In this document: in pieces, positions 9,089 through 32,039 of the stretch
How the letters are laid out: each line of letters opens with the position of its first letter
Numbering within the stretch: position 1 is the first letter of the stretch
Assembly (NCBI GenBank): GCA_002269645.1
Contig: NIVC01004898.1
Location: 1 to 32,039, forward strand
Source of the DNA: Macrostomum lignano
Lineage: Eukaryota
Direction: 5' to 3'
DNA: 32,039 nucleotides
Position numbers and translations under genes: made by a program
Notes under the pieces: generated by a model
Told to the model about the DNA's origin: nothing
The model's input: the letters and a program-made list of their open reading frames with translations, nothing else
The model's database searches: none

Positions 9089-9844
9089 TTAATCCTCATC
9101 GTCCTCTTTCATCAGATCTTTTAAGATTCGATTTTTCCTTTCTAACCTTGGGTTGATATATATATGTTTGTATTGGCTATCATCCCAAATTTTTTTACAC
9201 AAGCTTTTAAATTGTTTTGTATCCAACCCAGGATTAAATCTAGCGTGTATATTTTGTAAATCATAATTATCTAAATCAAACATTACACAACAACTTGCAT
9301 TCTTTTTTATAATCGATTCTAATTCTCTAAAGGACTGTGTTAGATAAAAAGCTCCAATTCCATCTCCTCTACCACTAACAAAAATTTCCTTTTGCAATTC
9401 TTGATCACCGTCATTAATACAATCATCAAAAATAATTAGTGTTTTATCATGTTTTGGAATTTGATCATAGGCTAATCGGGTTGATACTCTAACAGTTGGG
9501 GCTCGTTCGGTGATGTTTTCTGGTTGTTGTGCCATTGTTTTACATAAATCCTCAATGTCATCGAGTGTAAATCGCGGTTCGTCATCATCCTCATATTGCT
9601 CATATGCTCTTAACATTCTAAACAAGACATCTTTTTTTAATTTGTTTTTTAATCCATGTTTAAGAAATTCATAATATTTTATTCTAGGTTTGTTAGTATA
9701 AATTATTAAATTATTATAGTCTAACATTCCATCTGTTGTTAATAAATCGTAAACAAAGTGTGTTTTTCCTTTACCTGATCCTCCGATTACTAAACAAAGA
9801 AAAGGATCATTTGGAAATATCTTATCGTGTTTTGCCTTTACCAT
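9089..9844 (-). CDS. A32-like (FtsK-HerA) DNA packaging ATPase
   Basis: Walker A GGSGKGKT, Walker B LIIFDD, GR...I..FYLTQSF arginine-finger/sensor region. Confidence 0.92.
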   Translation of the reverse strand: MVKAKHDKIFPNDPFLCLVIGGSGKGKTHFVYDLLTTDGMLDYNNLIIYTNKPRIKYYEFLKHGLKNKLKKDVLFRMLRAYEQYEDDDEPRFTLDDIEDLCKTMAQQPENITERAPTVRVSTRLAYDQIPKHDKTLIIFDDCINDGDQELQKEIFVSGRGDGIGAFYLTQSFRELESIIKKNASCCVMFDLDNYDLQNIHARFNPGLDTKQFKSLCKKIWDDSQYKHIYINPRLERKNRILKDLMKEDDED

Positions 9845-9865
9845 TTTTAAAGAAATAATTTAAAT

Positions 9866-9940
9866 AGGCGCGACGGTCGGAGACCTGCGCCGCTTACAGC
9901 GGGGCGACGTGCTTTGCACTGCGACACTAAAGTGGCGCGT
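9866..9940 (-). terminator. Cluster of 3-4 GC-rich mini-hairpins across and just after the MCP stop codon
   Basis: Minus strand: GTGC-AAA-GCAC, CCGCT-GTA-AGCGG, GGTC-TCC-GACC inside GGCGC/GCGCC. The 12-mer GTGCAAAGCACG is identical to part of insert 1. The terminator role is only inferred. Confidence 0.45.
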
Positions 9941-11399
9941 CCCGAACAATCGTGCCATCAGCTTTAGCAATTGACATATATTCCTCTAGAAACAATACGT
10001 GTGCGTCTATTGCCTGATTACCGGTTTTATTAATCTCTAACATATAATTAAGTCCAATATTGGCTACGTTTTCTTTCTGTGCCGTTAGATCATAAACAAC
10101 CACTGGATGAATGTTTAGAAACTCTGTGGGTGTGTACTGAGGGACGGCATACGCTTCATTTTTAGCATAATCTTGATAATATTTTATAAAATCATTAACA
10201 TTATTATTTGCTATATTTAAATTTAGGGGGTCTTTAACCGGATAATATTGATCATCAACCTGCAGGCGGATATTCTGAACATTAAACTCGTTAATAGCTG
10301 CAGCCGCATTGTCTGTTGCGGTGGCTGCTTGTTCTGCTATGGCACCGGATTGAAGCCAATATAAATCCCCATTTGCTCTTTTACTCCTTCTATTTGTTAT
10401 CTTAAACCAAACAAAAATATATCTCACCCGACGTTTTGATGTCAGTATTTGCCACTGGAATGAATCCTGGTTATTATTAATGGTTCGCATAAAATGTCGA
10501 CGATTCAAATAAAATATTTCCTGATCATGCGTTAACTGATTATCGATGTGTTTTAAAAGTGGGGCTGTTACCTCAATAGTTGGTACGACTAATTGAATTG
10601 AATCTATACGAACTGCTATATCGGTTGAAATTGAGGTTCCATAAAGTATCCTAGGCTGATATCCACCAGATATTTGCAACTGTATCCCAAATTTTAATCC
10701 TTTCCATACCCGATTTGGTGAGAAAAACCCAAATAGTGGAAAGATTGAAAAGTCCTGCTCATATGCTGTTGCTGTGGTTAAAACCGCGACTGGGAATTTA
10801 TTCTGACGATCTATAAAACCAGTATTAATATCTTTTGTATTAGTCATAGTGGTTACAACTGGAACTATGTTTGTATTAAGGTAAACAATTAGCGCTGCAG
10901 TATCTGCACCGGCTGCGTTTTGTACATTAGGGAAAACTACTGCTTGCCCGTTACCTTTATCCGGCATCCACCCAACATTATCACCAACTTGTTTTGATAA
11001 ATAAGTATAATTTAAATGTTTCAAAACTCCATTAATCTCTGCGGGGTTTGATGATGTCTCAACCTCAGCACCATTAACAGTTAGTTGAGCTTGGGAAAAA
11101 CATTTATAAAACCAATCATTTTCTATTATTATTCTGGATCGATCTGCGATATCTCCGGCTGCAAGAGCAGTTCCATCATTTCTAGTATACAACCATCTAA
11201 CGCGGAAAAACGCATTTTTCATATCCAATATAGTGTTGGTTGCGCCGATGTCAAAAGTTACCGTTCCAGTAGTAAAGTTATTTGAATTATCACTTGTTGG
11301 TAGGGTATAATTTAAATCTCTTGCTCTGACCTCATTAATATACTGTCGGTGCTTTTTGAAATGAAATTTATCACTCCACATAGTTTTTGTTTCAGCCAT
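9927..11399 (-). CDS. Major capsid protein (double jelly roll, PY-like)
   Basis: 490 aa, beta-rich; FDI, D..N..F.V, FSQA.L.VNG..VE, R.IFV.F, L.VD...YP, F...HP...YDLT patterns; Polinton gene context. Confidence 0.88.
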   Translation of the reverse strand: MAETKTMWSDKFHFKKHRQYINEVRARDLNYTLPTSDNSNNFTTGTVTFDIGATNTILDMKNAFFRVRWLYTRNDGTALAAGDIADRSRIIIENDWFYKCFSQAQLTVNGAEVETSSNPAEINGVLKHLNYTYLSKQVGDNVGWMPDKGNGQAVVFPNVQNAAGADTAALIVYLNTNIVPVVTTMTNTKDINTGFIDRQNKFPVAVLTTATAYEQDFSIFPLFGFFSPNRVWKGLKFGIQLQISGGYQPRILYGTSISTDIAVRIDSIQLVVPTIEVTAPLLKHIDNQLTHDQEIFYLNRRHFMRTINNNQDSFQWQILTSKRRVRYIFVWFKITNRRSKRANGDLYWLQSGAIAEQAATATDNAAAAINEFNVQNIRLQVDDQYYPVKDPLNLNIANNNVNDFIKYYQDYAKNEAYAVPQYTPTEFLNIHPVVVYDLTAQKENVANIGLNYMLEINKTGNQAIDAHVLFLEEYMSIAKADGTIVRDAPL

Positions 11400-11433
11400 T
11401 TTTTTAAGTTAAAAAAGTTTTTTATGTTAAAAA

Positions 11434-12075
11434 ATGAGTCAATTTATGGACGTTGATGGAGAGTTAGCGATTTATAAAGAGAAGCAAAGATATTCTGATT
11501 TTGTTAGAAATTTACAAAAAAGAAAGTTAGGAATACAATTAGCTGGCGAAAGATTTGCTGCTCCTTTTGTTAATCCTATTACTGGGAAAATTAGTGAACT
11601 AGAAAAAACAGATAAAGATCTTCTGGAAAAAATTGCTAAAAATACTGAGCCAAAAGAGGATGAAATTTTGGATGATGAGCCGCCTGCTTATGGTGTTGCT
11701 CAAGCACAATTGAGAGTTATAGAGATTAGGGCTGAAGAGATTAGGGGTGGAGTTGATCGGCAACAATTTCCAAGAGTACCACCTAGTATTGCTGTTACAG
11801 ATTTAGGTAATAATAATTATCGAATTGGTAACGTTGATAAAGATCGAAATGAACTATATACAGAATTGGGTGGAGCATATAATATTATTATGAACCCTAG
11901 GGTAAAATTTAACCCGGATTTATATACTAAGGATGAATTAGTAAGTGCTAAAATTTTTTATAATGAGTTAGGAGGAGCTGTTAAAAATACCAGCTTGTAT
12001 AAATGGATTGTAAATTCTATAAATAACAAACCAGCTGTTGGTGATGGATTTAAAACCCGCGAAAACTTGTTTTAG
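11434..12075 (+). CDS. PZ-like/core-protein candidate (213 aa)
   Basis: N-terminal ...F..PIT..I.EL motif reminiscent of Polinton PZ-type ORFs; divergent from MCP. Assignment is from memory. Confidence 0.45.
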   Translation: MSQFMDVDGELAIYKEKQRYSDFVRNLQKRKLGIQLAGERFAAPFVNPITGKISELEKTDKDLLEKIAKNTEPKEDEILDDEPPAYGVAQAQLRVIEIRAEEIRGGVDRQQFPRVPPSIAVTDLGNNNYRIGNVDKDRNELYTELGGAYNIIMNPRVKFNPDLYTKDELVSAKIFYNELGGAVKNTSLYKWIVNSINNKPAVGDGFKTRENLF

Positions 12076-12133
12076 CTGCTGCGAAAGCTGCTGGACATAC
12101 AGGTGTTTAATTGTTAAATTTATTTTTTATAAA

Positions 12134-12637
12134 ATGGATAATACGATAAAAGATTGTCTTTGTAAACCTATTTATGATAAGGCTGGTTCTGACAGAATAC
12201 TAAATAAGATATTTCAAGATGAATTAATAATTGCAAACCGTATTAAAACAATTCAAATGAGACTTGGATATCTTTATGAATTATTAGCTATTAAACATTT
12301 TGGTTTTGAAAAAGTAAATAAAATTGATTTAATTCATACAGAAAGAAAAGTTGCGTTAGAGTTAAAATCTTCTGATAACACAGATAATTCATCAAGTCGA
12401 TTTAGAAATATTCAAAAGTTATTAGAATTTAAATATGTTAATCCCGAATTTGATTTATATTATATTTGCATTAATAATACTACTAAAAACCCCGTACAAA
12501 AAGTATTTGATAATGGAGTTACCTTGTTAACTGGGGAATTTGCTTTAAATTTTTTATATGGTGATCAATATTTAGAAATTATTAAATTGATAGAAACATG
12601 TTTTTTAAACATTAAAAATGAACCAACTTGTGTTTGA
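12134..12637 (+). CDS. PD-(D/E)xK nuclease resembling the Eco47II restriction endonuclease family (167 aa from the AAAATG at 12134)
   Basis: KTIQMRLGYLYE ... IDL-x6-K-VALELK-SSDNTDNSSS ... KL fits the Eco47II-family pattern KT..N.IG.FHQ ... D......K...E.KN..NT.NSSS as I recall it. Catalytic D and ExK are present. Confidence 0.65.
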   Translation: MDNTIKDCLCKPIYDKAGSDRILNKIFQDELIIANRIKTIQMRLGYLYELLAIKHFGFEKVNKIDLIHTERKVALELKSSDNTDNSSSRFRNIQKLLEFKYVNPEFDLYYICINNTTKNPVQKVFDNGVTLLTGEFALNFLYGDQYLEIIKLIETCFLNIKNEPTCV

Positions 12638-14220
12638 TGGAGGATTGTTAGATGTTCAAAAAGGATTAACAAGCTTACCACCAATCTTTACTACTGGGAG
12701 GTATACAAATGAATTACACATCCCATCTTACAACTTCGCGGGTGGAGCTCGAGCTGTGCCCGAGTGGTAGATGCAAAGCTACTGCTAGTCACTATTAGTG
12801 GCAACACCAGCCGCTCACTCAATCCCCTAAAGCTTCAAGTACCACTTTGTTTTCGAAAGATTACAAAGGAACAGAGGTAACTCCTCTTCCCAACGGTAAC
12901 AAGCTTGAAGATAAATATATGGGCAAGAGTGAATCGAAAACCTAACCTCATATGACTTGAGTATGGTTGAGATGCAACGACTGTACGCTGGTGGGCTTGA
13001 AGGACTTAGTCAATCCTTATGATAGCTTAAGACACAGTCTACTCCTTTGTGAAAGCAAAGGTATAAAGGCCGGGTTGACTCGACTCGATCTCCGATTAAA
13101 TCCTGACAATACTCCAAAATCTGATTCAATTCCAATAAATGGGATTGATTGGTTAGCATACTATCACGACTTAGCATATAGAGATGCTGACAAGAACCCG
13201 CCCGAGGAAGCATTAAGATTAAAACATGAAGCCGATCAAAAAATGATTCAAGGATTAGATAACTTGCAGGGATTATCGGTAGGGCAAAGATTAACTAGGT
13301 GGATGGTTAAAAAGATTTTGCAGTCTAAAGTTAAATTTGGTTTGGGAATTAATTATAATCAACATGGAAATAATTGTGTCGAGTGTTTATTATTAAGTGG
13401 TGGTGGGTTAAGTTCTGATGAGGCAAAGATTCTTCATAAAGAATATCGAAAACCTAAATTTTATAGAAAAATCATGAACTTCAAAAAGAATGAAATTTGG
13501 TATGCTGATTTAATGTCGATGCCGAACGAAAGAGGATATAAATATATCTTAACCATATTAGATGGTTTTACTCGATACGCGTGGGCTGTTCCTTTAAAAT
13601 CCAAAAAGGGAGAGGAGGTTGCTGCTGCTTTTAGAAGTCTTGGAGAAAAAAGCGAAAGATTGTGTGTTGATGAAGGAAAAGAATTTTACAATCCTCATAT
13701 GTATAAATTGTATCATTTTGAAAAAGGAAAAGAAAGGAAAAAAGACGCGAATGGGGAGTATATTAATAAAATTTATTCTATTTATGGAGAGAGTAAAAAC
13801 GCATTAATAGAAAGATTTAATCGAACTTTAGGTAAGAAATTATGGTTTCAGTTTAGTCTTAATGGTAACCAAAAGTGGGTAAAAATATTACCAGACGTAG
13901 TGAAAGATTATAACAATTCATATCATTCAGCTATAAAGATGACTCCTCAACAAGCTTATAACAATCCTGAAAAAGTTAAAGTTACTTTTGGAAAATTTGA
14001 AAAAAATAAAAAGAAATCTTTTAAGGTTGGTGATTCTGTTTATATCTATAAATGGAAAGATAAGTTTGAAAAAGGAAGAAAAGGATATTGGAAGATAAGT
14101 GAGAAATTTACTATCAGTAAAGTTTTAAATACCAATCCTACAACCTATATAATTGCTGATAAGGACGGTGAAGAAATATTGGGTTCTTTTTATGAGAACC
14201 AGATAATGTCTGCGAACTAA
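12618..14220 (+). CDS. PLA2 (parvovirus-type)-RVE integrase fusion, interrupted by a group I intron (exon 1 12618-12743, exon 2 from 13070)
   Basis: Exon 1 ends ELHIPSYNFAG. Exon 2 gives (PG)..TRLDLRL...PINGIDWLAYYHDLAY (PLA2 HD motif), then WYADL, LTILDGFTRYAW, VDEGKEF, IERFNRTL (DDE integrase) and an FKVGD C-terminal domain. One indel near 13073-13077 is needed to keep frame if the intron ends at 13069. Confidence 0.9.
12744..13069 (+). ncRNA. Group I self-splicing intron (326 nt, no internal ORF)
   Basis: P1: exon CGGGU with IGS GCCCG 12758-62 (U.G at the splice site). P2; P2.1. P3: CACCAGC 12805-11 / GCTGGTG 12987-93. P4: TCACTC / GAGTGA. P5a-c. P6: ATC / GAT; P6a. P7: GACTG 12979-83 / CAGTC 13035-39 with bulged C and A-U closing pair. 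J8/7 TAAGACA; P8. P9: CCTTTGT-GAAA-GCAAAGG. Terminal G. Confidence 0.92.
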
Positions 14221-14230
14221 GTTCAAACAG

Positions 14231-14455
14231 TTACTTAAGACAACATGGTAGTAAATTTTTTATTACAAACAAAAACAATATTATTACTATAATTGTTACT
14301 AATATTATTATTGACATTTGTTCAACTGTTATCAAACTTAAATTTTCATTAAGTTCATTAATTGGAACATTTCCGATGTAGGAATAGTTTACCTTCATTT
14401 TTTTATATATATTTTTCACAATAAATGTCGTTTCTGTTATAGAATAATAGTTCAT
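14231..14455 (-). CDS. Small single-TM protein (74 aa)
   Basis: AAAAAATG start; hydrophobic MSIIILVTIIVIILFLFVI. Confidence 0.5.
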   Translation of the reverse strand: MNYYSITETTFIVKNIYKKMKVNYSYIGNVPINELNENLSLITVEQMSIIILVTIIVIILFLFVIKNLLPCCLK

Positions 14456-14471
14456 TTTTTAAATATTTTTT

Positions 14472-14786
14472 TCACATAAAAATTTCACTTTCATTCTCTG
14501 AATCACTGGTTTCATATGAACTATTTGTTGATTCGGAATCTGTTGATCTAACCTCCCAATCATCCGAATTTAAATAATCTCCAAGTTGAAATATTAACTC
14601 ACCCTCTTGTTCTAAATCATACATCTCATCTAGCTCTAATTGATAAAGTTTTAGGTCGTGCTTGTCGTCATATTTTAAATAAACTTCATCAATTATTCCA
14701 TTCAAAATATGTTGTTTTATTATCTCTGCATTTTTAGCAACAGTCTCAAAAGTATCACTAACAGAAAAGGTGTAAACTCGGGTCAT
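14472..14786 (-). CDS. Acidic hypothetical protein (104 aa)
   Basis: AAAAATG start; D/E/S-rich tail. Confidence 0.55.
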   Translation of the reverse strand: MTRVYTFSVSDTFETVAKNAEIIKQHILNGIIDEVYLKYDDKHDLKLYQLELDEMYDLEQEGELIFQLGDYLNSDDWEVRSTDSESTNSSYETSDSENESEIFM

Positions 14787-14843
14787 TTTTAGTAACAGAA
14801 AAAGACCCTTCGCGCCTGCGGCGCGGGCAAGGGGTTATAGAGT

Positions 14844-15110
14844 AGTAGTATAGAAAAAGACGCTTCTAGATCAGACCTTATTTTAATTACCGTTTTTAAG
14901 GTCTTAAGAGGGGGGACGCGAGGGGAGTATTGGGGAGTGTTTGGAAGTGTTGGGATTGATTTTTATTGTTAGGGGTGATTATGGGTGATTAGATGTATTA
15001 ATGGTGATTAGATGTGTTTTTTTATTTACCCCCCGTGTCCCCCCTCTAGACCCTTAAAACGGTAATTAAAAAAGTGCTCTGGGTCTAGAAGCGTCTTTTT
15101 CTATACTACT
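14844..15110. repeat. Terminal fold-back: ~90-bp inverted repeat (27 bp perfect) ending at the Polinton terminus
   Basis: AGTAGTATAGAAAAAGACGCTTCTAGA (14844-70) is the exact reverse complement of 15084-15110. Imperfect pairing continues to ~14934/15029 around a G/T-rich spacer. Confidence 0.9.
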
Positions 15111-15536
15111 GTTGAGTTCGTTATTTCTGGCAGTTGATTAAATTATTGTTTTGTTTTATTCTCACCCTTGACACCAAGGTCAAATCCGGTGGCAATCATG
15201 GCAGTGACAGGCCAGATACGAAGCAAACGCATGCCATCGGTCTGACTGGAACTAAATGTAGTAGCAATCTGTGACCCCCGTCCTCGAGGCAGCGAAAAAG
15301 GAATAAATTTCTTTTTGAATAAACTAAATGCAGCTTTCGACCTTGTACAGTGTCTATTGCCAATTTTTTTAGGAAAACGATGCTTAAAATAAAAAAGCAC
15401 CAAGCGCTGGAAGCCTGCTATCTAGCCTAAGACATCAGCACCCCTGTGAGCCTTGGCATCAAAACCTCCCTTTAAGGCTAAGCCATGGCTTAATACTAGT
15501 TTTCCATTTTATGCTTACCAGCAACTCCCAATCGAC

Positions 15537-16527
15537 CCTTGACATCTCAGCAATTCCCCCCGTGAGCATCGTGAGCATTGGCATCTCAGCAATTCCCCCC
15601 GTGAGCATTGGCATCTCAGCAATTCCCCCCGTGAGCCTGGCATCTCAGCAATTTCCCCCGTGAGCATTGACATCTCAGCAATTCCCCTCGTGAGCCTGGC
15701 ATCTCAGCAATTCCCCTCGTGAGCCTGGCATCTCAGAAATCCCCCCCGTGAGCCTGGCATCTCAGCAATTTCCCCCGTGAGCATTGACATCTCAGCAATT
15801 CCCCTCGTGAGCCTGGCATCTCAGCAATTCCCCTCGTGAGCCTGGCATCTCAGAAATTCCCCTCGTGAGCCTGGCATCTCAGCAATTCCCCCCGTGAGCC
15901 TGGCATCTCAGCAATTTCCCCCGTGAGCATTGACATCTCAGCAATTCCCCTCGTGAGCCTGGCATCTCAGAAATTCCCCTCGTGAGCCTGGCATCTCAGC
16001 AATTCCACTCGTGAGCCTGGCATCTCAGCAATTCCCCCCGTGAGCCTGGCATCTCAGCAATTCCCCTCGTGAGCCTGGCATCTCAGCAATTCCCCTCGTG
16101 AGCCTGGCATCTCAGAAATTCCCCTCGTGAGCCTGGCATCTCAGCAATTCCCCTCGTGAGCCTGGCATCTCAGCAATTCCCCTCGTGAGCCTGGCATCTC
16201 AGCAATTCCCCTCGTGAGCCTGGCATCTCAGCAATTCCCCTCGTGAGCCTGGCATCTCAGCAATTCCCCTCGTGAGCCTGGCATCTCAGCAATTCCCCCG
16301 TGAGCATTGACATCTCAGCAATTCCCCCGTGAGCACTGGCATCTCAGCAATTCCCCCCGTGAGCATTGGCATCTCAGCAATTCCCCCCGTGAGCATTGAC
16401 ATCTCAGAAATTCCCCCGTGAGCATTGACATCTCAGCAATTCCCCCCGTGAGCATTGACATCTCAGCAATTCCCCCGTGAGCACTGGCATCTCAGCAATT
16501 CCCCCCGTGAGCATTGGCATCTCAGCA
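15537..16527. repeat. Minisatellite, ~28-30 bp unit GTGAGCCTGGCATCTCAGCAATTCCCCTC
   Basis: More than 30 visible tandem copies. Confidence 0.95.
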
Positions 16528-16549
16528 AGTCAAGATCGGCGACGAGTGA

Positions 16550-16760
16550 GTCACCAACGCGGCAACGTGGCCTAGTTCGTCCAAGATTAGTTTGCGCCGT
16601 CTACTACGAAGACGGCGACTCCAACTGGCTGGCCGCATCAGCGCCGAGTCGCACTGCCCACACGAGGTGCTGCTGCTGACGCTGCAGACACGACAGGCGC
16701 GCACTCGGCGTTTCGTCGACAGCCTGCTGAACAAATGTGACGCCGCTCTCTTTAGATGGG
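16550..16760 (+). mobile_element. Degenerate 3' fragment of a non-LTR (RTE/L2-like) retrotransposon ORF
   Basis: VTNAA...RRRRLQLAGRI...VLLLTLQ...RTRRFVDSLL matches the LINE RT C-terminal pattern RRL.LAGH...LLW...R.R..Y.D.L. Confidence 0.55.
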
Positions 16761-16917
16761 TTTTTCACACACTGATCATGTCCTTGACTGCCACTCTCCC
16801 TGGCTGTCACATGTACATGCATCTGATAGCTGTCCTTGCATTTTAGAAACTAAATCGTTTCCAAGACTTTAGAAACGTTTTTTTGTACAAATTTTGCATT
16901 AGGAGAGCATGCACTGG

Positions 16918-17144
16918 GGGTGTTTCTCGAAACTCACGTAAGTTTTATGGTAAGTTAGATCGTAAGAAAGAAATTTACGTGTAGCGTAAGTTTGCTCGTA
17001 AGACGCTTTCTCAAAACTCACTTATACTTTGCGTGGCTTATGCTGTTCGTAAGTCGTATCTGAAACGAAAAGTTGCATGTCTATGGTCATAAATCTGTAA
17101 ATATCTTTACTTAGTCTATCGTAAGTTGCTTTCGAGAAAGACCC
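16918..17144. mobile_element. MITE-like element with 15-bp terminal inverted repeats
   Basis: GGGTGTTTCTCGAAA ... TTTCGAGAAAGACCC (1 mismatch); internal CGTAAG motifs. No clear TSD. Confidence 0.45.
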
Positions 17145-20100
17145 ACCTTCGATAAAGTTTAACTTGACTTGGCTTGACTAAAGCTTCACGCAAGGACGAC
17201 TTAAGTAGAAGGACGGGAAACCTCGTTTCTTAGAAAATTTTTGAAGACACTTTTTTCCCGAAAAAATACACTGCGGAGATAGGAAATTTTCATTTTTTCA
17301 GCACAAAAATTGCTATAACTTTTGATAGGAGGCAGCTCCAGTGTTCATCTTTTGATATGTTGTGCCTTTTTTATTGCTCTATCGATATTTATAAGCTTTC
17401 CGTTCAGAAAATTAGGATTCAGAAAAACAGCACCGTAACAACTTGGTGATTTGAAGAGATCAACGCCCCTACGATACTGCGTTCAAGTAAATGTTTTAAT
17501 ATATACCCGGTAATTATACGTTGCCAATTTAGACTACACAGAGAGAAGTACATGTTAGACTAATAAATATTTAAATCGTAAAATCTCCTCTATAGCCCGA
17601 AATTGTGGACATACGCTCGTAAAAGAAACAGCAGCATAAAAGAGACGTATGTGCACAGCGTGTACAGAACGGCGTGTGGCAGTGTCTAACTGACAAAAAC
17701 AAATACAGCATATAGCTCGTACTTTTGTTAATCTCTGGCTCACTAGATCGGGGTGGATAATTTTCAATGTCCGTGGGTGAAGCAGTAATTTTGGTGAGGC
17801 CGGGGTGAGCCTTAGCCATAAGTGGCAAGATCCCTAGGATCCCCGAATTCCTGGAGTGTCTCACTGGCAAGGCACACTATTTCTGGGGCTCAAGCTGCTG
17901 CAACCGTCAAAAACAGCAAGAGGCCTGATCAGGTGGTCGTTTGCCAGCTCCTTCACGGGTTAAGTTCACCTAGCGCAATAATGGCAGCTCAAAGCAGCAC
18001 AGAGAGCGCGGTACTCTTCCTTAAATACGGGCAGCTCACCAGCGATACAAAATCGTCGGCAAGAAGTCTCAGGCCGCACCACAACCCTCCGAGCCGAGTA
18101 CGCCTTCGGTGACAATCTCATCAGAGACCTTGTTTACGTCAGAATCGAATCATACTATAGCTTATCAAATCTTATCTGGAATTGTGTTCGACTTTGTTAC
18201 TCATTCTCTTGTACCGTACCTGTGACTATTGGATAAGTTTTGGTTGGACTCGCCGGTGATAGGCAAATAGGAATCAACCGTTTTAAAACATCCGAATCGC
18301 TCCAGTATTTGTCTTGGGCGTGACTATTTGGCCGTATATACATGTATATTACACCGTGGAACTGGATTGTGCGAAAGTTTCAAAAAAGGACGCTTGAGCT
18401 TTTTACAATGTTAATGCTCTCACACTCTTACTGCTCATAAATCACAGCCATCCTCGATTCCAATAAACAGAAAAGTAGCATTAATTAAGCTTTTTGAGCA
18501 ATATTTTAAAGCTCCAACTTCCCGGCGATTCCTACTTGTATATGTGCTGCATAACAAAGTCTTCTTTAAATATTCAAGAAAGTTTTTCTCAAGTTTTTCG
18601 TTAAGATAATCAACACATGTTTAAAAAACAAACAATAGTTTAATTAAGTTGTTTTGAAATGTTTTTCACAATTTCAATTTTCTATTTTCAATGAAACGAG
18701 ACTTTTAGAAAGCAGTTAATCTTTCAGAAAAAACAGGATTGATTGTGACTATGTTAGTGATTACACTGTGTGTTACATTTCCATTTCATAAAATAGTTGA
18801 ATCTAATCAATTAAATTTATCTCGTGGTTGCTAGATTCCCTTTTACAGACTAATCGGACTTAGAGAAAGTTTCTAATCACTATTTGATTGTTTTAAAACG
18901 TTTCTAGTGACTGTCTGGTATAATGTCGTATTCACAGCTGAGCCAGGATGTTACTGAACGTTATTCAAATGTCTCCAATTTTTTTCGCAGTGGTCACATA
19001 GAAGACATTGACAAAATTGGTAAGCAGGAAAGCTAGAAGCTTTAAAGTATTGCTATTTTCATCAATAAATTTTAACAACAAATAAATATAGTCTAGACTC
19101 AACAAATATTTTTGCAATAATTAATTTTTGATAGTATTTGACTGGTTTATTTAGCAGTTAATTTGTCAATAATAAAATTTAAAATGATAATATAAATCCA
19201 AAGCTATGCTATAGCTATGGTTTATATTTTGTCAGTTGTTATTGTTATAGCAAAAAAAAGTATTGAAAGAATATAGTTATAAAAATCTATAAAAATGTTG
19301 TTTCAATGAATGTTTTTCATTGATATATTTTCAAAAATTTTTTTAATACATATGTTTGACAAACTAGTCATATGCATATCTTTAAAAAAGTTATTTCAAA
19401 AGTTCATAACTATTAGTATACTTCATCATTTATAGTATACTTATATTTTTTAAGCAGAAAATTTTCTCTGCTTTCACATATTGTGATTTTTTTCCTTTCA
19501 TATATAATTTTATCTTTTTATTTATAGAAAAAAACAACACATTCATTTTTCATCTTATCCATTTTTTGGCTTATAGTATAACCATTTTTGCTTATAGTAT
19601 TGTTATTATAGTAACTTTATATAAAAATTCACAATGGTTATTTTTATAGTCAACACCTAAAATATATATATATATACTTGTGGTGTCAATCATAAGACTC
19701 TAAGAGACTATAAATATAGTAATAAGAGATATCAAAACTTGTTTTTAATGCATTGATACTAAGTTAACTTTCTTGTCATCAACCATAGCTTATAACTAAA
19801 TGCTTAGTATAATGAAATTTTCCTAATAAATATAAAAAAGCCATTCAGCTTTTTTTATTTAGTGACTATAAAAATAACAATTTTGATATTTATATAGTTT
19901 TGTTAAGTTAATCACTTCAGCTCAGATAGTATTCATTGTGTTAACCATAAAAATAGCAATTTCACTATTTACATGGTCACCGTAACAATAACAAAAATCT
20001 TATATTTTATTGGGATTTAATATTTTGTAAGATTTAGAAGCAGTTTTTTTCTTTAAGCTTAAAACAATCAGGGTCAAATAAAATAATTTTAGTATGCTAA

Positions 20101-20302
20101 AGTAGGCATATTTTAGGCATATTTTAAATGCCTTTAAACAAAGAACCTATTATGGTGTTATAATTGATATTTTTTGAATATTTATTATTAATATTACTAA
20201 AAATTATCTATCTGTAAATCAACTAATATATAAACAGTGGTTTGTATAGCAATTATATTCAGCACTTTTTCTGCTCACTTCTATCCATTTTATTATACAG
20301 GT

Positions 20303-23300
20303 ATGTATGCAGCCACTAGTCAGCTACAGCAAAGGGCCAATGAGGTTCGGGCTAACAGGGTGAATTGGCAATCATATTTGCAGTAAGTGAATTTCTATGA
20401 CTTTGTTTTTTGTATGGTTTATTAATTCTCTTTTAACATATTGGGAGCAAGAAAGTTTTAATTATATAGGAGTAATTGCAATAGGGACTCATCTTATTAG
20501 TAGTTTAGTTGATATTTAGACATTTTTTTATTAATGAAAAAGACAATGAGATGTAGATCTAAGGTAGAGAGAGATAAAGGGTAAATTAATCAGATTCAGT
20601 TAGATGAAGGGAGAGTCAATGAGATGCAGGGAGAGTCAATGAGATGCAGGGAGAGTCAATGAGATGCAGGGAGAGTCAATGAGATGCAAGGAGAGTCAAT
20701 GAGATGCAGGGAGAGTCAATGAGATTCAGGGAGAGTCAATGAGATGCAAGGAGAGTCAATGAGATGCAGGGAGAGTCAATGAGATGCAAGGAGAGTCAAT
20801 GAGATGCAGGGAGAGTCAATGAGATGCAGGGAGAGTCAATGAGATGCAGGGAGAGTCAATGAGATGCAGGGAGAGTCAATGAGATGCAGGGAGAGTCAAT
20901 GAGATGCAAGGAGAGTCAATGAGATGCAAGGAGAGTCAATGAGATGCAGGGAGAGTCAATGAGATGCAAAGAGAGTCAATGAGATGCAAAGAGAGTCAAT
21001 GAGATGCAGGGAGAGTCAATGAGATGCAGGGAGAGTCAATGAGATGCAAGGAGAGTCAATGAGATGCAGGGAGAGTCAATGAGATGCAGGGAGAGTCAAT
21101 GAGATGCAGGGAGAGTCAATGAGATGCAGGGAGAGTCAATGAGATGCAGGGAGTGAATGAGATGCAGGGAGAGTCAATGAGATGCAGGGAGAGTCAATGA
21201 GATGCAAGGAGAGTCAATGAGATGCAAGGAGAGTCAATGAGATGCAGGGAGAGTCAATGAGATGCAAGGAGAGTCAATGAGATGCAGGGAGAGTCAATGA
21301 GATGCAGGGAGAGTCAATGAGATGCAAGGAGAGTCAATGAGATGCAGGGAGAGTCAATGAGATGCAGGGAGAGTCAATGAGATGCAGGGAGAGTCAATGA
21401 GATGCAGGGAGAGTCAATGAGATGCAAGGAGAGTCAATGAGATGCAAGGAGAGTCAATGAGATGCAAGGAGAGTCAATGAGATGCAAGGAGAGTCAATGA
21501 GATGCAGGGAGAGTCAATGAGATGCAGGGAGAGTCAATGAGATGCAAGGAGAGTCAATGAGATGCAGGGAGAGTCAATGAGATGCAGGGAGAGTCAATGA
21601 GATGCAGGGAGAGTCAATGAGATGCAGGGAGAGTCAATGAGATGCAAGGAGAGTCAATGAGATGCAGGGAGAGTCAATGAGATGCAGGCAGAGTCAATGA
21701 GATGCAGGGAGAGTCAATGAGATGCAGGGAGAGTCAATGAGATGCAAGGAGAGTCAATGAGATGCAGGGAGAGTCAATGAGATGCAGGGAGACACAGCCA
21801 GAGTAACTCAACCCCACATGCGCAGAGGCCAAATGATAGACCAGGCTGACTATGACTTCATCGTGAAGCTGGAGTCCCGGGCCAGTCAACCGGAGCAGCG
21901 CAAGGCTCTGATAGACGAGAATTCCAGTCAGTTTGTTCGAACGATACTCGCCCTGCTGGCTAGAATCTCCAAGGAGCAGACTGTGCAGTACATCCTAACT
22001 CTGCTCGATGACCTGCTGCAGGAGGAAAAGCAACGCGTCGAGCTGTTCAAAGCTTATTCCCAGCGACGCAGAGAGAGCGTATGGGCGCCGTTCTTTGGTA
22101 TGCTGCACAGGCAGGATGGCTTCATTGTCAATCAGGCATCGAGAATCATCGCCAAAATTGCCTGCTGGGGTAACCAGCTGATGGAGCACACTGAGCTGCT
22201 GCATTACCTGTCCTGGCTCAGGGAGCAGCTGCGACTGCCTGTAGGATTTTTAATTGTCTTCTCCGATGCTGTGTCTTCCCTATGATCCCAGTGTCTTCCT
22301 TATGATCCCAGAGTCTTCCTTATGATCCCAGTGTCTTCCTTATGATCCCAGTGTCTTCCTTATGATCCCAGAGTCTTCCTGGTGATCCCAGTGTCTTCCT
22401 TATGATCCCAGTGTCTTCCTTATGATCCCAGTGTCTTCCTTATGAACCCAGTGTCTTCCTTATGATCCCAGTGTCTTCCTTATGATCCCAGAGTCTTCCT
22501 TATGATCCCAGTGTCTTCCTTATGATCCCAGTGTCTTCCTTATGATCCCAGTGTCTTCCTTATGATCCCAGAGTCTTCCTGGTGATCCCAGTGTCTTCCT
22601 TATGATCCCAGTGTCTTCCTTATGATCCCAGTGTCTTCCTTATGAACCCAGTGTCTTCCTTATGATCCCAGTGTCTTCCTTATGATCCCAGAGTCTTCTT
22701 ATGATCCCAGTGTCTTCCTTATGATCCCAGTGTCTTCCTTATGATCCCAATGTTCCCTGTGATCTCAGTGTCTTCCTTATGATCCCAGAGTCTTCCTTAT
22801 GATCCCAGTGTCTTCCTTATGATCCCAGTGTCTTCTTATGATCCCAGTGTCTTCCTTATGATCCCAGTGTCTTCCTTATGATCCCAGTGTCTTCCTTATG
22901 ATCCCAGTGTCTTCCTTAAGATCAGTGTCTTCCTTATGATCCCAGTGTCTTCCTTATGATCCCAGAGTCTTCCCTATGATCCCAGTGTCTTCCTTATGAT
23001 CCCAGTCTTCCCACGATCCCGGTGTCTTCCCTATGATCCCAGTGTCTTCCCTATGATCCCAGTCTTCCCCACGATCCCGGTGTCTTCCCCATGATCCCAG
23101 AGTCTTCCCCGTGATCCCAGTGTCTTTCACACGAGCATCATGAAGCCCATATGCAATCCATATTATTCCAATGTCTCCCTGGCCTCACAGTGCTCTCTCT
23201 TGCTAACAACACCTTGCCGCTTTGAAATCCCCTCCGTAGTCGAACGAGTACATCCAAACAGTGGCCCGCTGCCTGCAAATGATGCTCAGAGTTGGGCCCT

Positions 23301-26300
23301 ACAGACAGGCATTCTGCGACATTGACGGCATTGCCACCTTGGCCAGCGTTCTGTCAACTAAGGTCAACTATCAGATCCAGTACCAGCTGGTGTTCTGCCT
23401 GTGGTGCCTCAGCTTCGATGCTGATATTGTTATGCGAATGAAGAAGTGAGTTTTATTTATTCTGCAGTTTGCGGAAGAGTAGCGTTAGTTCTATTGGCGC
23501 TAAAGTCACGTATACGCTAAACTTGGCGCCACGATCTGTGTCTGCCAGTGGCACCGAATTTCGTGTGTGGATGGCGCCAAATTCAGTATGATAACGGCGC
23601 CAAATTTAGTATGTTGATGGCACCAGATTCAGTATGATAACGGCGCCAAATTCAGTATGTTGATGGCGCCAAATTCAGTATGATAACGGCGCCAAATTTA
23701 GTATGTTGATGGCACCAGATTCAGTATGATAATAACGGCGCCAAATTCGTTATGTTGACGGCGCCAAATTCAGTATGATAACGGCGCCAAATTCAGTATG
23801 TTGATGGCGCCAAATTCAGTATTTTGATTGCGCCAAATTCGATATGTCAGTGGCGCCAAATTCAGTGTTTTGATTGCGCCAAATTCGATATGTCAGTGGC
23901 GCCAAATTCAGTATTTTGATTGAGCCAAATTCGATATGTCAGTGGCGCCAAATTCAGTATTTTGATTGCGCCAAATTCGATGTCAGTGGCGCCAAATTCA
24001 GTATGTTGATGGCGCCAAATTCAGTATGTTGATGGCGCCAAATTCAGTATGTTGATGGCGCCAAATTCGGTATGATAATTTTTACATTGATAAGACGATA
24101 ATTCGTCTATATCAACGTTTCCAGTATATTTTAGTTAAAATATAAACAAAATGAATAAATATTCCTGCCGCCTACTGTTAGTAGCTGATAGCTCTCGTAT
24201 ATCAAGAGTAGCCGCTCTCTCTCCCGCGCAGGTACAATCTGATCCCAATCTGCGCGGACGTTCTGTGCGAATCCGAGAAAGAGAAAGTTAATCGCATTGT
24301 GTGCGCCTTCTTTCGGCACCTGCTTGAGAAGCCAACTGACTCAATGATGGTTAGGGAGAGCGCGCTGTCCATGGTGCACTGCAAAGTGCTTAAACAGGTG
24401 CGAATGAGTATGATTTATTGCTTATCAACTGGGTGCTGGCATGTCAATTTTTTGCTAGAAAGTTACCCTCCATCCTGTAAGCTGTCAGTTCAGACTGTCA
24501 CCCTCCATCCTGTAAGCTGTCAGTTCAGACTGTCACCCTCCATCCTGTAAGCTGTCAGTTCAGACTGTCACCCTCCATCCTGTCATCTGTCAGTTCAGAC
24601 TGTCACCCTCCATCCTGTCATCTGTCAATTCAGACTGTCACCCTCCATCCTGTCATCTGTCAGTTCAGACTGTCACCCTCCATCCTGAAAGCTGTCAGTT
24701 CAGACTGTCACCCTCCATCCTGAAAGCTGTCAGTTCAGACTGTCACCCTCCATCCTGTAAGCTGTCAGTTCAGACTGTCACCCTCCATCCTGAAAGCTGT
24801 CAGTTCAGACTGTCACCCTCCATCCTGTAAGCTGTCAGTTCAGACTGTCACCCTCCATCCTATCCGCTGTCAGTTCAGGCTGTCACCCTCCATCCTATCA
24901 GCTGTCAGTTCAGGCTGTCACCCTCCATCCTATCAGCTGTCAGTTCAGGCTGTCACCCTCCATCCTGTAAGCTGTCAGTTCAGGCTGTCACCCTCCATCC
25001 TGTAAGCTGTCAGTTCAGGCTGTCACCCTCCATCCTGTAAGCTGTCAGTTCAGACTGTCACCCTCCATCCTGTAAGCTGTCAGTTCAGACTGTCACCCTC
25101 CATTATGTAAGCTGTCAGTTCAGACTGTCACCCTCCTTTCTGTAAGCTGTCAGTTCAGACTGTCACCCTCCATCCTGTAAGCTGTCAGTTCAGACTGTCA
25201 CCCTCCATCCTGTAAGCTGTCAGTTCAGACTGTAACCCTGCTCCCTGCTCACTCACCCGCCTCCAGGTGGAGCTGCTTGTGCAGAAAAAATACGACGATC
25301 CTGAGCACGAAGACGATTTACAGTTCCTGTTCGAACGACTGAGCACTTCAATCCAAGATCTGAGCTCATTCGACGAATACGCCAGCGAATTGAAGGCGGG
25401 CCGACTCGAGTGGAGTCCGGTGCACAAGTCCGAGCGCTTCTGGCACGAGAATGCCACCAAGCTTAACGAGCGAAACTATGAACTGCTGAAGATCCTGGTT
25501 CGCCTGTTGGAGACTAGCAAAGACTCGCTCGTGCTCTGCGTTGCCGCTCACGATGTTGGAGAGTATGTTCGGCATTATCCCAGGGGAAAGACGTGAGTTA
25601 TTGTACGCTTATGCTTTAGACATCTCATGTTCCCATCTCAACATGAGAAATCCCACACTTCTAATCCCAAGATGAAAAATCTTAGACTTTAATCCCAACA
25701 TGAGAAATCCCAAAATAAGAAATCCATACTCTAATCCCAACACGAGAAATCCCAAACTCTAATCCCAACATGAGAAATCCCAAACTCTAATCCCAACATG
25801 AGAAATCCCACTCTAATCCCAACATGAGAAATCTCACACTTCTAATCCCAACATGAGAAATCCCAAGCTCTAATCCCAACATGAGAAATCTCACACTTCT
25901 AATCCCAGCATGAGAAATCCCATACTCTAATCCAAACATGAGAAATCCCAACTTCTAATCCCAACATGAAAACTTCCACATTCTAATCCCCACCTCGACA
26001 TGAGAGATCTCACACATTTATCTCTCGCTAATTAAATGCGGTTTCACACAACTGCGCAGGGTTATTGAGCAGCTGGGCGCTAAAGAGCTGGTGATGAGGA
26101 TGCTGACAAGCGACGATCCCAATGTTCGGTACAACGCTCTCATTGCTGTGCAGAAGATCATGGTGCACAACTGGTCTGTTTTGGCATCATTTTGTCCTTG
26201 CTTGGTATAATTATTTTCATTCTTTCAAGGCCGTTTATCTTGTAGGTGGAGCTGTTAGACTGTCACCCTCTTCTGACTTGCTGTAGATTAGACTGTCACC

Positions 26301-27101
26301 ATACTCTGACCTGCTGTAGATTAGACTGTCACCCTCTTCTGACCTGCTGTAGATTAGACTGTCACCATACTCTGACCTGCTGTAGATTGGACTGTCACCC
26401 TCTTCTGACTTGCTGTAGATTAGACTGTCACCCTCTTCTGACCTGCTGTAGATTAGACTGTCACCCTCTTCTGACCTGCTGTAGATTAGACTGTCACCAT
26501 ACTCTGACCTGCTGTAGATTAGACTGTCACCATACTCTGACCTGCTGTAGATTGGACTGTCACCCTCTTCTGACTTGCTGTAGGTTAGACTGTCACCCTC
26601 TTCCGACTTGCTGTAAGTTAGACTGTCACCCTCTTCTGACCTGCTGTAGGTTAGACTGTCACCCTCTTCCGACTTGCTGTAGGTTAGACTGTCACCCTCT
26701 TCTGACCTGCTGTAGGTTAGACTGTCACCCTCTTCCGACTTGCTGTAGGTTAGACTGTCACCCTCTTCCGACTTGCTGTAAGTTAGACTGTCACCCTCTT
26801 CTGACCTGCTGTAGGTTAGACTGTCACCCTCTTCCGACTTGCTGTAGGTTAGACTGTCACCCTCTTCTGACCTGCTGTAGGTTAGACTGTCACCCTCTTC
26901 CGACTTGCTGTAGGTTAGACTGTCACCCCACTCTGACCTGCTGTAGATTATAAATACAGAAACAGACGATCAACCTACATTTCATTTCACTACACGCGCA
27001 GGGAGTACCTTGGCAAGCAGATTGAGGACAAGGCCAAGGCTGAGACTGGCGGTGGCGGCAAATCGGGCGGATCGCAGAGCCAGCAGGCTGTGAAATCTTG
27101 A
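20303..27101 (+). CDS. ATP6V1H: V-type proton ATPase subunit H; coding exons 20303-20382, 21826-22240, 23240-23445, 24232-24397, 25267-25592, 26060-26173, 27002-27101
   Basis: Exons splice in frame at GT-AG sites: [107 protein letters not shown] small upstream exon (~18990-19019, ...EDIDKIG) may extend the N-terminus. Confidence 0.96.
20610..21790. repeat. Intronic minisatellite, 20 bp GAGATGCAGGGAGAGTCAAT
   Basis: Direct tandem copies in intron 1 of the V-ATPase H gene. Confidence 0.95.
22283..23125. repeat. Intronic minisatellite, 20 bp GATCCCAGTGTCTTCCTTAT
   Basis: Tandem copies in intron 2. Confidence 0.95.
23570..24075. repeat. Intronic minisatellite, ~22-23 bp GGCGCCAAATTCAGTATGTTGAT
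   Basis: Tandem copies in intron 3. Confidence 0.93.
24468..25232. repeat. Intronic minisatellite, 35 bp CTGTCACCCTCCATCCTGTAAGCTGTCAGTTCAGA
   Basis: Tandem copies in intron 4. Confidence 0.95.
25625..25990. repeat. Intronic minisatellite, ~28-30 bp CTCTAATCCCAACATGAGAAATCCCA
   Basis: Degenerate tandem copies in intron 5. Confidence 0.9.
26255..26950. repeat. Intronic minisatellite, 33 bp GACTGTCACCCTCTTCTGACCTGCTGTAGATTA
   Basis: Tandem copies in intron 6. Confidence 0.95.
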
Positions 27102-27419
27102 GTTGGAAAGTCGCAGCCGCAGCTCATTTTAATTACAATTGGATGACCTCAATAGTTATGCTGACGTAGTTCCACATTTGTCTAGTATTATAGATTCACT
27201 CTCTGTAGCTGCCGTTTTGGCTAGAAATTGATAAACCCGATCTGGTAGTGTAGGCTTTCTTCTGTGTTGTTAGTCTTCATGCGCAATTGAAATCATATAT
27301 TCAGCTGGGGATATTTGTCCCATTATATTATATTACGGTACATGCTTGCGCTCGTTTTACTTTAAGTAGTTGTCCTAGTCTTTTTCCTGTTTTTGGCTTC
27401 TTTTCAGCTGTTTCCGGTC

Positions 27420-27580
27420 CGTCTCTGTCTGTCTGTCTGTCTTAGTGTCTGTTTGTCTGTCTGTCTGTCTGTCTTAGTGTCTGTCTGTTTGTCTGTCTGT
27501 CTGCCTGCCTGTTTGTCTGTTTTTCTGTCTGTCTGTCCGTCTGTTTTTCTGTCTGTCTGTCTGCCTGTTTGTCTGTCTGC

Positions 27581-27611
<31 letters not shown>

Positions 27612-27633
27612 CCTGTTTGTCTGTCTGCCTGTT

Positions 27634-27665
<32 letters not shown>

Positions 27666-27668
27666 ATA

Positions 27669-27707
<39 letters not shown>

Positions 27708-27785
27708 TAGTGTCTGTCTGTCTGTCTGTCTGTCTTAGTGTCTGTCTGTCTGTCTGTCTGTCTTGGTGTCTGTCTGTCTGTCTGC
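27420..27785. repeat. (TGTC)n microsatellite
   Basis: Degenerate tetranucleotide run. Confidence 0.95.
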
Positions 27786-28349
27786 AGACATGCAACTCTT
27801 TAAGTTATCTCCAAATCCCATTTCTGTTTATTTTTGACAAACTACTAGCAGAAAAAAAATGATTTTACTTTTCCTCGTTGATATTTTATTTTATTCCACA
27901 GCAAATTTTCTTGCTTCGAGTTGGCTTTTTATGCAGAAATAAATCATATTTTCAATGATATTCCATTTTTTGTTGTCCTTGACTAGCACACCGTTTTCTC
28001 CATTCTCAAATACTTCAATGACTTTTTAAATTGTCGTGCGAGTCTTGGAGACAGACCACAGTTTTTAATTAACTCACAGAGCCTCAGTTTTCTCATTAGA
28101 ACTTTTTAAGCTTTGCACTCATTTTAGTTCCTACTTTATGCTTTTGACGTTGTGTGTACATTGATTGATAGCCTACTGTTGTAACTATTGATAATTACAT
28201 GACTATTCTCTAATTTGTTCCTTTATTAATTAATTGCATTCACATAAAAATTGCATAATATTTTACAGTAAATGGGTTCCAATTCTAACTCTAGTTTTAT
28301 TGTAGAATAAAATATATTTGCCTTATCCATTATCTTATCGTAAGAAATT

Positions 28350-28885
28350 GAGTGAGTCACGGGAATTAAGCATCACAGCTTGAGTGAGTCACGGGGATTA
28401 AACATCACATCTTAAGTGAGTCACGGGGATTAAGCATCAAAGGTTGAGTGAGTCACGGGGATTAAGCATCACAGGTTGAGTGAGTCACGGGGATTAAGCA
28501 TCAAAGGTTGAGTGAGTCACGGGGATTAAACATCAAAGGTTGAGTGAGTCACGGGGGTTAAGCATCAAAGGTTGAGTGAGTCACGGGGGTTAAGCATCAA
28601 AGGTTGGGTGAGTTACGGGGATTAAGCATCAAAGGTTGAGTGAGTCACGGGGGTTAAGCATCAAAGGTTGAGTGAGTCACGGGGATTAAGCATCAAAGCT
28701 TGAGTGAGTCACGGGGATTAAGCATCACAACTTCAGTGAGTCACGTGGATTAAACATCAGAGGTTGAGTGAGTCACGGGGATTAAGCATCAAAACTTGAG
28801 TGAGTCACGGGGATTAAGCATCACAGGTTGAGTGAGTCACGGGAATCAAGCATCACAGCTTGAGTGAGTCACGGCGATTAAACAT
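28350..28885. repeat. Minisatellite, 32 bp GAGTGAGTCACGGGGATTAAGCATCAAAGGTT
   Basis: About 16 tandem copies directly upstream of the WNK-like gene. Confidence 0.95.
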
Positions 28886-28948
28886 CAGAGGTTTAGTTCG
28901 TCTATCAAACTACGTGGCTATCAATCACTTCTCAACCTTGCTGGCAAT

Positions 28949-31909: not shown

Positions 31910-32039
31910 GTGAGTATGCATTCTGAATTAGTGAGATTTTCGGGATGAGATCTCTCTGTTAGGGAGATTTCGGGATGAGATCTCTCTATAAAGGTTAGAT
32001 TTCGGTATAAGATCTTTCTGTTAATGTTGAGATTTCAGG

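Follow-up and report, generated by a model that had tools for sequence, protein, structure and literature searches.

The DNA analysed here, called the window in what follows, is a 32,039-nt stretch of the Macrostomum lignano contig NIVC01004898.1. Positions 1–14843 of it belong to an integrated polinton-like virus (PLV), of which they cover 14.8 kb on the right-hand side; its left end lies outside the window. This assignment is based on a packaging ATPase, an open reading frame (ORF) collinear with a capsid gene, a discoidin-domain protein, an rve integrase, a jump in G+C content (about 32% in 1–14843, rising at about 15000) and a palindrome at the end of the element. The original prediction, made from the letters of the sequence, had called the element a Polinton; PLV is the better name. 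The features of interest are a gene for an Eco47II-like nuclease, a group I intron that splits the adjacent PLA2-integrase gene, and the absence of the word GGNCC from the element.

The nuclease gene (12134–12637, + strand) is free-standing and encodes a PD-(D/E)XK protein of 167 aa with the motif D65...E76-x-K78. In Pfam, RE_Eco47II (PF09553) was the sole family matched by this protein, at E 3.9e-5 and 23.8 bits, just below the cut-off of 25.9. The same family was matched by all ten aligned members of the nuclease family at E ≤ 0.01 (best E 4.1e-7), and precomputed tables assign it to three homologues as well as to the genes of two relatives, L008 and L027 (the relatives, denoted by the prefix L, are metagenomic contigs and often partial). 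Nine close homologues share 50–69% identity with the window nuclease, and D65, E76 and K78 are invariant among them. The motif D65...E76-L-K78 was present in 21 of the 24 family members scanned, and a search with the family profile reached 283 cluster representatives. The AlphaFold2 model of the window nuclease (pLDDT 89) had EcoO109I (1wte/1wtd) as its top fold match in the PDB, with a probability of 1.0 and a TM score of 0.64, followed by other PD-(D/E)XK nucleases, the superfamily to which the Eco47II family has also been assigned (PMC3424549); a fold search of the BFVD retrieved only generic PD-(D/E)XK or Mrr-like viral proteins. The Eco47II-like character claimed for the protein was thus supported by both the profile match and the best fold. 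A profile search of PDB sequences with the nuclease family and an NCBIfam search of the nucleases gave no match, a cluster look-up for ten distant family members gave no informative names, and scanning IMG/VR with the nuclease alignment revealed no relative; the metagenome scan with this alignment yielded one short contig, L006. No methyltransferase family was found in the window ORFs of at least 74 aa, the left arm lying outside the window, or among the called genes of L001–L005, L008–L010, L027 and L028, some of which are partial contigs, in agreement with the expectation that the nuclease has no partner enzyme.

As predicted, the nuclease ORF overlaps the next gene, by 20 nt, and this overlap contains the ATG (12618) of exon 1 of the PLA2-integrase gene. 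Exon 1 (12618–12743, + strand, 42 codons) was delimited by comparison with integrases that have no interruption, whose N-termini are homologous to it (P0010, 72% identity), and with the homologous exon 1 ORFs found in L001–L006, the six recovered contigs that carry close homologues of the window nuclease. It ends with ..HIPSYNFAG, the last codon being GGT at 12741–12743, and together with a short read-through it makes up the 50-aa ORF at 12618–12770. Exon 1 is followed by an ORF-free group I intron of 325 nt (12744–13068, + strand, with G13068 or G13069 as its 3′-end), which was recognized by Rfam family Intron_gpI (RF00028) and by homology to the introns of L001–L006 and L011. The local Rfam search matched 12760–13061 with 42.9 bits (cut-off 50, E 1.6e-9); at the gathering score no Rfam family was matched in the whole window, the intron appearing only in this permissive local search. 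The homologous introns of L005 and L006 score above the cut-off (65.3 and 80.6 bits, respectively).

The exon end CGGGU (12739–12743) pairs with the guide GCCCG (12758–12762) in a P1 helix (12739–12762, + strand) that was read directly from the sequence and appeared in the minimum free energy (MFE) fold, and the U12743·G12758 pair stands at the 5′ splice site, as expected for group I introns. P1 covaries in three forms, UUAGGU/GCCUAA in L001–L004, CAGGU/GCCUG in L005 and L006 and CGGGU/GCCCG in the window, which places the 5′ splice site after GGT 12743. The P2 hairpin (12763–12786, + strand) has a counterpart of different sequence at the same place in every relative, and the short P2.1 hairpin (12788–12802, + strand; 15 nt, 6 bp with a 3-nt loop) occupies the position that the nuclease ORF has in the relatives. 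The MFE fold recovered P1, P2, P2.1, P3, P4 and P9 (z = −2.7); 24 of the 64 predicted intron pairs show compensatory changes, and P3 and P4 differ from the relatives in sequence with their complementarity kept. The covariation of P1 and P2 was read directly from the sequences; the MAFFT alignment offset two groups by one column. A terminal G stands at the 3′-end of all eight introns. The group I intron appears to be real and is presumably self-splicing. An alternative position of the 5′ splice site, behind U12765 with a join to 13070, was rejected: it would be in frame, but would consume the P2 hairpin common to all relatives and add eight residues to the calcium loop, and the covariation of P1 favours 12743.

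Exon 2 (13069–14220, + strand), delimited by its ORF and by Pfam matches, encodes the rest of the PLA2-like domain (about 13129–13275) and the rve integrase core (about 13483–13689). The original prediction had put the intron exactly between GGT and CCG in the calcium-binding loop of the PLA2 domain, such that splicing would rebuild GGTCC. The 5′ site after GGT agrees with the P1 pairing, and GGT|CCN is the arrangement in seven relatives, but the 3′ site before CCG did not hold for the window copy, where the join 12743|13070 (GGT|CCG) hits a stop almost at once. The only join that stays open is 12743|13069 (GGT|GCC, Gly-Ala), which gives 383 codons to 14220, reads ..NFAG|AGLTRLDLRLNPDN.. and creates no GGNCC. 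With this join P9 and the splice site are 7 nt apart, the spacing also seen in L005 and L006, and the Pfam PLA2 match spans the junction (profile positions 2–68) and rises from 14.9 to 20.1 bits (cut-off 23.9), which shows the two exons to be one PLA2-integrase gene. The assignment to PLA2 is clear in the homologues, where the match reaches 33–46 bits, and weak in the window copy with its 20.1 bits. Both exon–intron junctions in the window DNA lack GGNCC, as had been claimed.

The word GGNCC is absent from 1–14843, where 15.9, 11.5 and 5.1 sites are expected under Markov models of orders 1, 2 and 3, respectively, and it ranks first in depletion among 128 palindromic patterns there, so the proposed purge of the element was confirmed. 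The count was extended to a nuclease-bearing set of 94 kb, consisting of the window, L001–L006, L008 and L009 with the flanks excluded. This pooled set has two GGNCC sites against 36.5 expected at order 2 and 20.2 at the maximal order, which again ranks the word first of the 128 palindromes, and the result was the same when the window was left out (2 vs. 25, rank 1). CCNGG, a word of the same composition, occurs 62 times in the set against 62.4 expected. Fourteen PLV contigs with a related integrase and no nuclease, which served as controls, have 204 GGNCC sites against 196 expected (rank 81). The predicted co-occurrence of nuclease and depletion was hence found across the relatives, and 52 GGNCC sites lie in the flanks and the nested retroelement of the same nuclease-bearing contigs. 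One of the two residual sites is the Gly-Pro codon pair at the PLA2 loop of L008, and the other is in L003, a PLV copy interrupted by a retroelement insertion. This insertion, at 6343–9975 of L003, is a nested Ty3-like element with protease, reverse transcriptase, RNase H and integrase. Chance, low G+C content and codon bias were considered as causes of the deficit, and are countered by the Markov models of orders 1–3, by the normal frequency of CCNGG and by the low-G+C controls L007 and L025. The word CANTG is also under-represented, with a weaker deficit (20 vs. 46–50 in 1–15000 of the window, 193 vs. 269 in the pooled nuclease-bearing loci).

Since Gly-Pro must be encoded as GGN-CCN, the purge reaches the proteins. 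In the ORFs of the nuclease-bearing set this dipeptide occurs once against 32 expected, the reverse dipeptide Pro-Gly occurring 27 times, and in the controls Gly-Pro was found 58 times against 71 expected. The view that this codon pair is unable to avoid the site thus found support at the protein level. As Eco47II has been assigned to GGNCC (PMC10305163) and EcoO109I cuts RG^GNCCY (PMC3089450), the family name, the nearest fold and the avoided word agree, and GGNCC is most likely the target of the window nuclease. The word is missing in every flank context, which suggests that the specificity is probably no longer than these five bases. Two other specificities were considered on the same grounds: one for GGWCC only does not fit the depletion of GGSCC (about 1 observed vs. 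about 8 expected, taken as pooled GGNCC minus GGWCC), and one for RGGNCCY only does not fit the loss of sites of all flank types.

The position of the nuclease gene is different in the relatives. In L001–L006 it lies inside the intron, the order being exon 1, intron P1 and P2, nuclease ORF, intron core and exon 2. Exon 1 of these contigs ends with ..HIPxYNYLG or ..YSFTG, the last codon being GGT, and exon 2 starts with CCN GGN (PGTRLD.. or PGTNLD..). The nuclease ORF sits between the two strands of P2.1, a stem of 14 bp in L001 and 10 bp in L005, whereas the window intron has no endonuclease ORF and its P2.1 is merely the 15-nt hairpin. A homologous ORF-less intron interrupts L011 at GGT|CCT. 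The intron consequently lies exactly inside GGT|CC in seven relatives (L001–L006 and L011), six of which (L001–L006) have the Eco47II-like nuclease encoded within it. In a rough neighbour-joining tree, the window nuclease falls beside the intron-borne L005 group, and the free-standing genes of L008 and L009 are on deep branches. In L011 a nuclease of a second type accompanies the homologous intron: the gene for a GIY-YIG ‘group I intron endonuclease’ (TIGR01453, E 2.8e-10) is free-standing and lies close upstream of exon 1 (features at 2804–3145 and 3169–3600), and this contig has no GGNCC (0 vs. 5.6 expected).

The integrase has 1106 homologues, and Gly-Pro stands at the loop in 80 of the 85 listed ones with an uninterrupted loop, the proline after the glycine being replaced in five homologues. 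The intron, present in the window, L001–L006 and L011, is absent from the same codon pair in L026, L008 and 80 further Gly-Pro homologues. L026, which encodes the closest integrase (P0010, 72% identity), has neither the nuclease nor the intron; the homologue of the window gene at 11434 directly abuts its integrase, and the only GGNCC of the contig is the Gly-Pro codon pair at the loop. L008 has no intron and keeps the loop Gly-Pro uninterrupted, and a divergent member of the nuclease family is encoded elsewhere in its genome. In L009 (Gly-Ala) a nuclease homologue lies directly upstream of an intron-less integrase and the PLV part is free of GGNCC, and L010 (Gly-Ala) is purged as well. L027 (Gly-Thr), a contig chosen solely for its loop, proved to carry an Eco47II-like gene overlapping the start of the integrase, and has 0 GGNCC against 6–8 expected, with 15 CCNGG. 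L028 (Gly-Ala), which begins at the integrase, has 0 GGNCC against about 3.6. In the relatives the conserved loop Gly-Pro thus has one of three fates: the intron splits it, Gly-Ala or Gly-Thr takes its place, or it persists as the sole site. The claim that Gly-Pro is strictly essential and can be kept only by means of the intron did not survive, as the purged L009, L010, L027 and L028 have Gly-Ala or Gly-Thr without the intron and L008 has an uninterrupted Gly-Pro. Two further nuclease genes were seen in these contigs: a second Eco47II-like paralogue at 4148–4654 of L027, which is a marine element (HMM E 3.7e-24), and, at 1553–1951 of L028 and directly downstream of the Gly-Ala-loop integrase, a nuclease gene assigned to another family, PDDEXK_3.

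The lack of GGNCC could also be due to pressure from outside, exerted by a restriction system of this specificity in the host or in a helper virus, in which case the gene of the element would be a captured passenger or inactive. L010, L011 and L028 point in this direction, being without GGNCC and having no Eco47II-like gene in the stretch examined, as does the segment 15111–20333 of the window, which lies beyond the element and is also free of GGNCC up to the next site at 20334. The three contigs are partial, however, and the segment is mostly satellite or AT-rich DNA with an order-3 expectation of only 2.4 sites. Moreover, avoidance follows the gene (2 vs. 36.5 with it and 204 vs. 196 without it), and the choice of L027 by its loop variant alone led to a nuclease gene. 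An outside source of the purge therefore appears very improbable.

The finding of the same ORF inside the same intron in six relatives suggests that the nuclease is a homing endonuclease, and we favour, with moderate confidence, the interpretation that the nuclease and the intron together make up a mobile group I intron, in which the homing endonuclease is of restriction type and, having a short target, purges the genomes that carry it. The nuclease would cut intron-less alleles at the GGNCC of the Gly-Pro codon pair, repair from an intron-bearing copy would spread the intron, and the inserted intron would protect its own allele by destroying the target site. As the target would be only five bases long, any genome carrying the nuclease would have to lose GGNCC everywhere, which would account for the loss of GGNCC and Gly-Pro without a methyltransferase. 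The window, with a free-standing nuclease upstream of exon 1 and an ORF-less intron, would then represent collaborative homing as known from phages. That the nuclease may act as a free-standing homing enzyme for the ORF-less intron had been the second option of the original prediction, and it is the one that fits best.

The same genes could instead form a restriction-like weapon that degrades the GGNCC-containing DNA of the host, a helper giant virus or competitors, the purge being self-immunity and the intron being retained as a shield of the Gly-Pro pair and not for homing. A purge that is genome-wide, down to the protein sequence, makes sense only if any GGNCC is cut, thus foreign DNA would be cut too; the flanking host-like DNA is rich in such sites, free-standing copies without any intron occur in L008, L009 and L027, and the scanned ORFs contain no methyltransferase. 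On the other hand, an ORF inside the intron in six relatives, and an intron inside the predicted target, are the signature of homing, the Gly-Ala and Gly-Thr variants indicate that a shield is not required, and L008 tolerates an uninterrupted site. As the main role of the nuclease, a weapon seems unlikely to us, but it may hold together with homing, and the data are compatible with a nuclease that also cuts the DNA of competitors, helpers or hosts. For the full scenario, in which a restriction-fold homing enzyme with a 5-bp target has, in a lineage of eukaryotic viruses and without a methylase, forced the loss of GGNCC and Gly-Pro with the three outcomes at the loop, and would also cut competitor, helper-virus or host DNA, we consider the chances to be about even.

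Several points weigh against the mobile-intron interpretation or limit its reach. The controls are more distant from the window than the nuclease-bearing contigs and mostly have a higher G+C content than that set, and the close relationship of L001–L004 makes the pooled P-values overstate independence. The window nuclease is about 2 bits short of the curated PF09553 cut-off and the intron is below the curated Rfam cut-off (42.9 vs. 50 bits). L008 keeps an uninterrupted GGGCC at the loop despite its family member, the purged L010, L011 and L028 count here as well, and the missing left arm of the window could hold a methyltransferase. The sequences show what the genes are, how the intron folds and where it lies, the depletion of the site and of the dipeptide, and that this depletion goes together with the nuclease; cleavage at GGNCC, splicing, homing and any present activity of the window copy are inferred. 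In the window itself the nuclease gene does not lie within the intron, splicing at the join that corresponds to the one in the relatives would put exon 2 out of frame, and the upstream neighbour gene (11434–12110, + strand), defined from the ORF list and by comparison with L026, has one frameshift relative to its L026 homologue. The window copy may accordingly be decaying, or the assembly may contain indel errors.

These defects raise the question whether the window system is a relic, its nuclease and intron being fossils of an L005-like ancestor and its GGNCC-free state merely inherited. Besides the out-of-frame join and the frameshifted neighbour, the integration of the element beside satellites and the scores of the intron and the nuclease, which are below those of the relatives, would agree with this. 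However, the nuclease ORF, exon 1, the 383-codon exon 2 and the ATPase and capsid ORFs are all open; the frame changes in the window concern the integrase, and only if the splice site of the relatives is used, and the gene at 11434–12110, all other ORFs examined being open. In addition, an in-frame join exists one base upstream, 7 nt after P9 as in L005 and L006, there is precedent for Gly-Ala in L009 and L010, and GGNCC has not re-arisen across 14.8 kb. An inactive window copy is a possibility that we take seriously, although we hold it to be the less probable case; its sequence is compatible with a working Gly-Ala gene, early decay or an assembly error.

Comparison with known systems shows what the present case has in common with them and where it differs. 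In collaborative homing, a layout known from phages (PMC3984707), a free-standing nuclease gene likewise stands beside an intron-bearing gene, the target coincides with the point of insertion and the intron shields the allele that contains it; moreover, the nuclease ORF inside the intron, as in the relatives, is the end state predicted by that model. The layout of an adjacent free-standing nuclease and an ORF-less intron is present in the window and, with a GIY-YIG gene, in L011, the identity of target and insertion site being a prediction here. The differences are that the carrier is a PLV of a eukaryote, that the nuclease has an Eco47II-type fold and not that of the HNH, GIY-YIG or EndoVII enzymes, and that the target is apparently only 5 bp, so that the whole carrier genome is purged. 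The use of a restriction-enzyme fold by a group I intron has a parallel in I-Ssp6803I, a homing endonuclease of PD-(D/E)XK type that belongs to an intron in a cyanobacterial tRNA (listed in PMC3424549). Its family is a different one, PF11645, no sequence similarity to it was found, and its target is long (17 bp), so it needs no genome-wide avoidance. Of Eco47II and EcoO109I, the window protein matches the Pfam family of the former, just below the cut-off, and has the latter as its best structural match; the D...ExK motif is present and the avoided word is exactly GGNCC. It is shorter (167 aa vs. about 217–270), no partner methyltransferase was found for it in the ORFs scanned, its gene belongs to a eukaryotic virus and lies within an intron in the relatives, and its specificity is a predicted one.

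Avoidance of restriction sites occurs in phage and virus genomes, and chloroviruses and marseilleviruses encode restriction–modification systems of their own. The present case resembles such avoidance in that a single short palindrome is strongly under-represented and is linked to a nuclease whose predicted specificity matches it, but here the avoided site matches the nuclease of the element itself and not that of its host, protection would come from the absence of sites and not from methylation, and the loss of Gly-Pro extends to the protein level. Group I introns of PLVs have been listed in a 2025 survey, which reported RF00028 introns of 309–376 bp in PLVs of Rhodomonas lacustris, Paulinella micropora and Desmodesmus; the gene that holds them, about 50 aa long, has no annotation there, no endonuclease was named, and neither Eco47II nor site avoidance was mentioned (PMC12220804). 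The size of that host gene matches the 50-aa ORF 12618–12770. The present analysis names the PLA2-integrase as that gene, places the insertion at Gly|Pro and links a nuclease and a purge to the intron.

The other genes and features of the element are those of a PLV. An A32-type packaging ATPase was detected by the Pfam scan at 9089–9844 (− strand), and the 490-aa ORF at 9927–11399 (− strand) was found by comparison to be collinear with the double-jelly-roll (DJR) capsid gene of L001. The 681-aa protein encoded at 5612–7657 (− strand) contains an F5/8 type C (discoidin) domain (Pfam, E 2e-11) and probably serves as a fibre or in attachment, a role also reported for other PLVs. Ten unannotated window ORFs gave no match in a PHROGs search. 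The right end of the element is a palindrome of 267 nt (14844–15110), with perfect outer arms of 27 nt and inner arms of 43 nt, which sits exactly at the G+C jump, with satellite-rich host-like DNA beyond it, and may represent either a hairpin at the terminus or a head-to-head fusion of two inverted termini. The flank (15111–32039) is host-like, has a higher G+C content than the element and consists largely of many different satellites, including a 29-mer repeated 33 times at 15570–16528 and 20-mers repeated 60 and 43 times at 20602–23126, as well as an AT-rich non-coding stretch at 18500–20500. In L001, several plant microRNA models, some of them with scores above gathering, match both strands of a long near-perfect hairpin at 8262–8390, which is probably a palindrome and not a microRNA.

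Full-text literature searches on Eco47II in connection with introns, and on group I introns of PLVs or virophages, returned no description of the arrangement. Its supposed novelty appears to hold for the link between the nuclease and site avoidance, but not for group I introns in PLVs, which the survey cited above already lists. Each component is of a known kind, and it is the combination, with its genome- and proteome-wide footprint, that appears to be new. If the interpretation is true, the system would be a natural intermediate joining restriction enzymes and homing endonucleases, two subjects mostly treated separately, in the form of a restriction fold with a target of restriction length located in or beside a self-splicing intron. 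The free-standing, intron-borne and empty-site states would form a comparative series on the formation of mobile introns, in eukaryotic viruses and not in phages, and the recently listed, unexplained group I introns of PLVs would be assigned a gene, the PLA2-integrase, and a candidate endonuclease. It would also suggest a nuclease-based layer of competition among PLVs and helper viruses. Above all, the results suggest that one selfish nuclease reshaped whole viral genomes: it would dictate which nucleotide words and which amino-acid combinations a virus uses, almost abolishing one dipeptide, and would provide an unusually clean case of selection at the DNA level overriding protein sequence.

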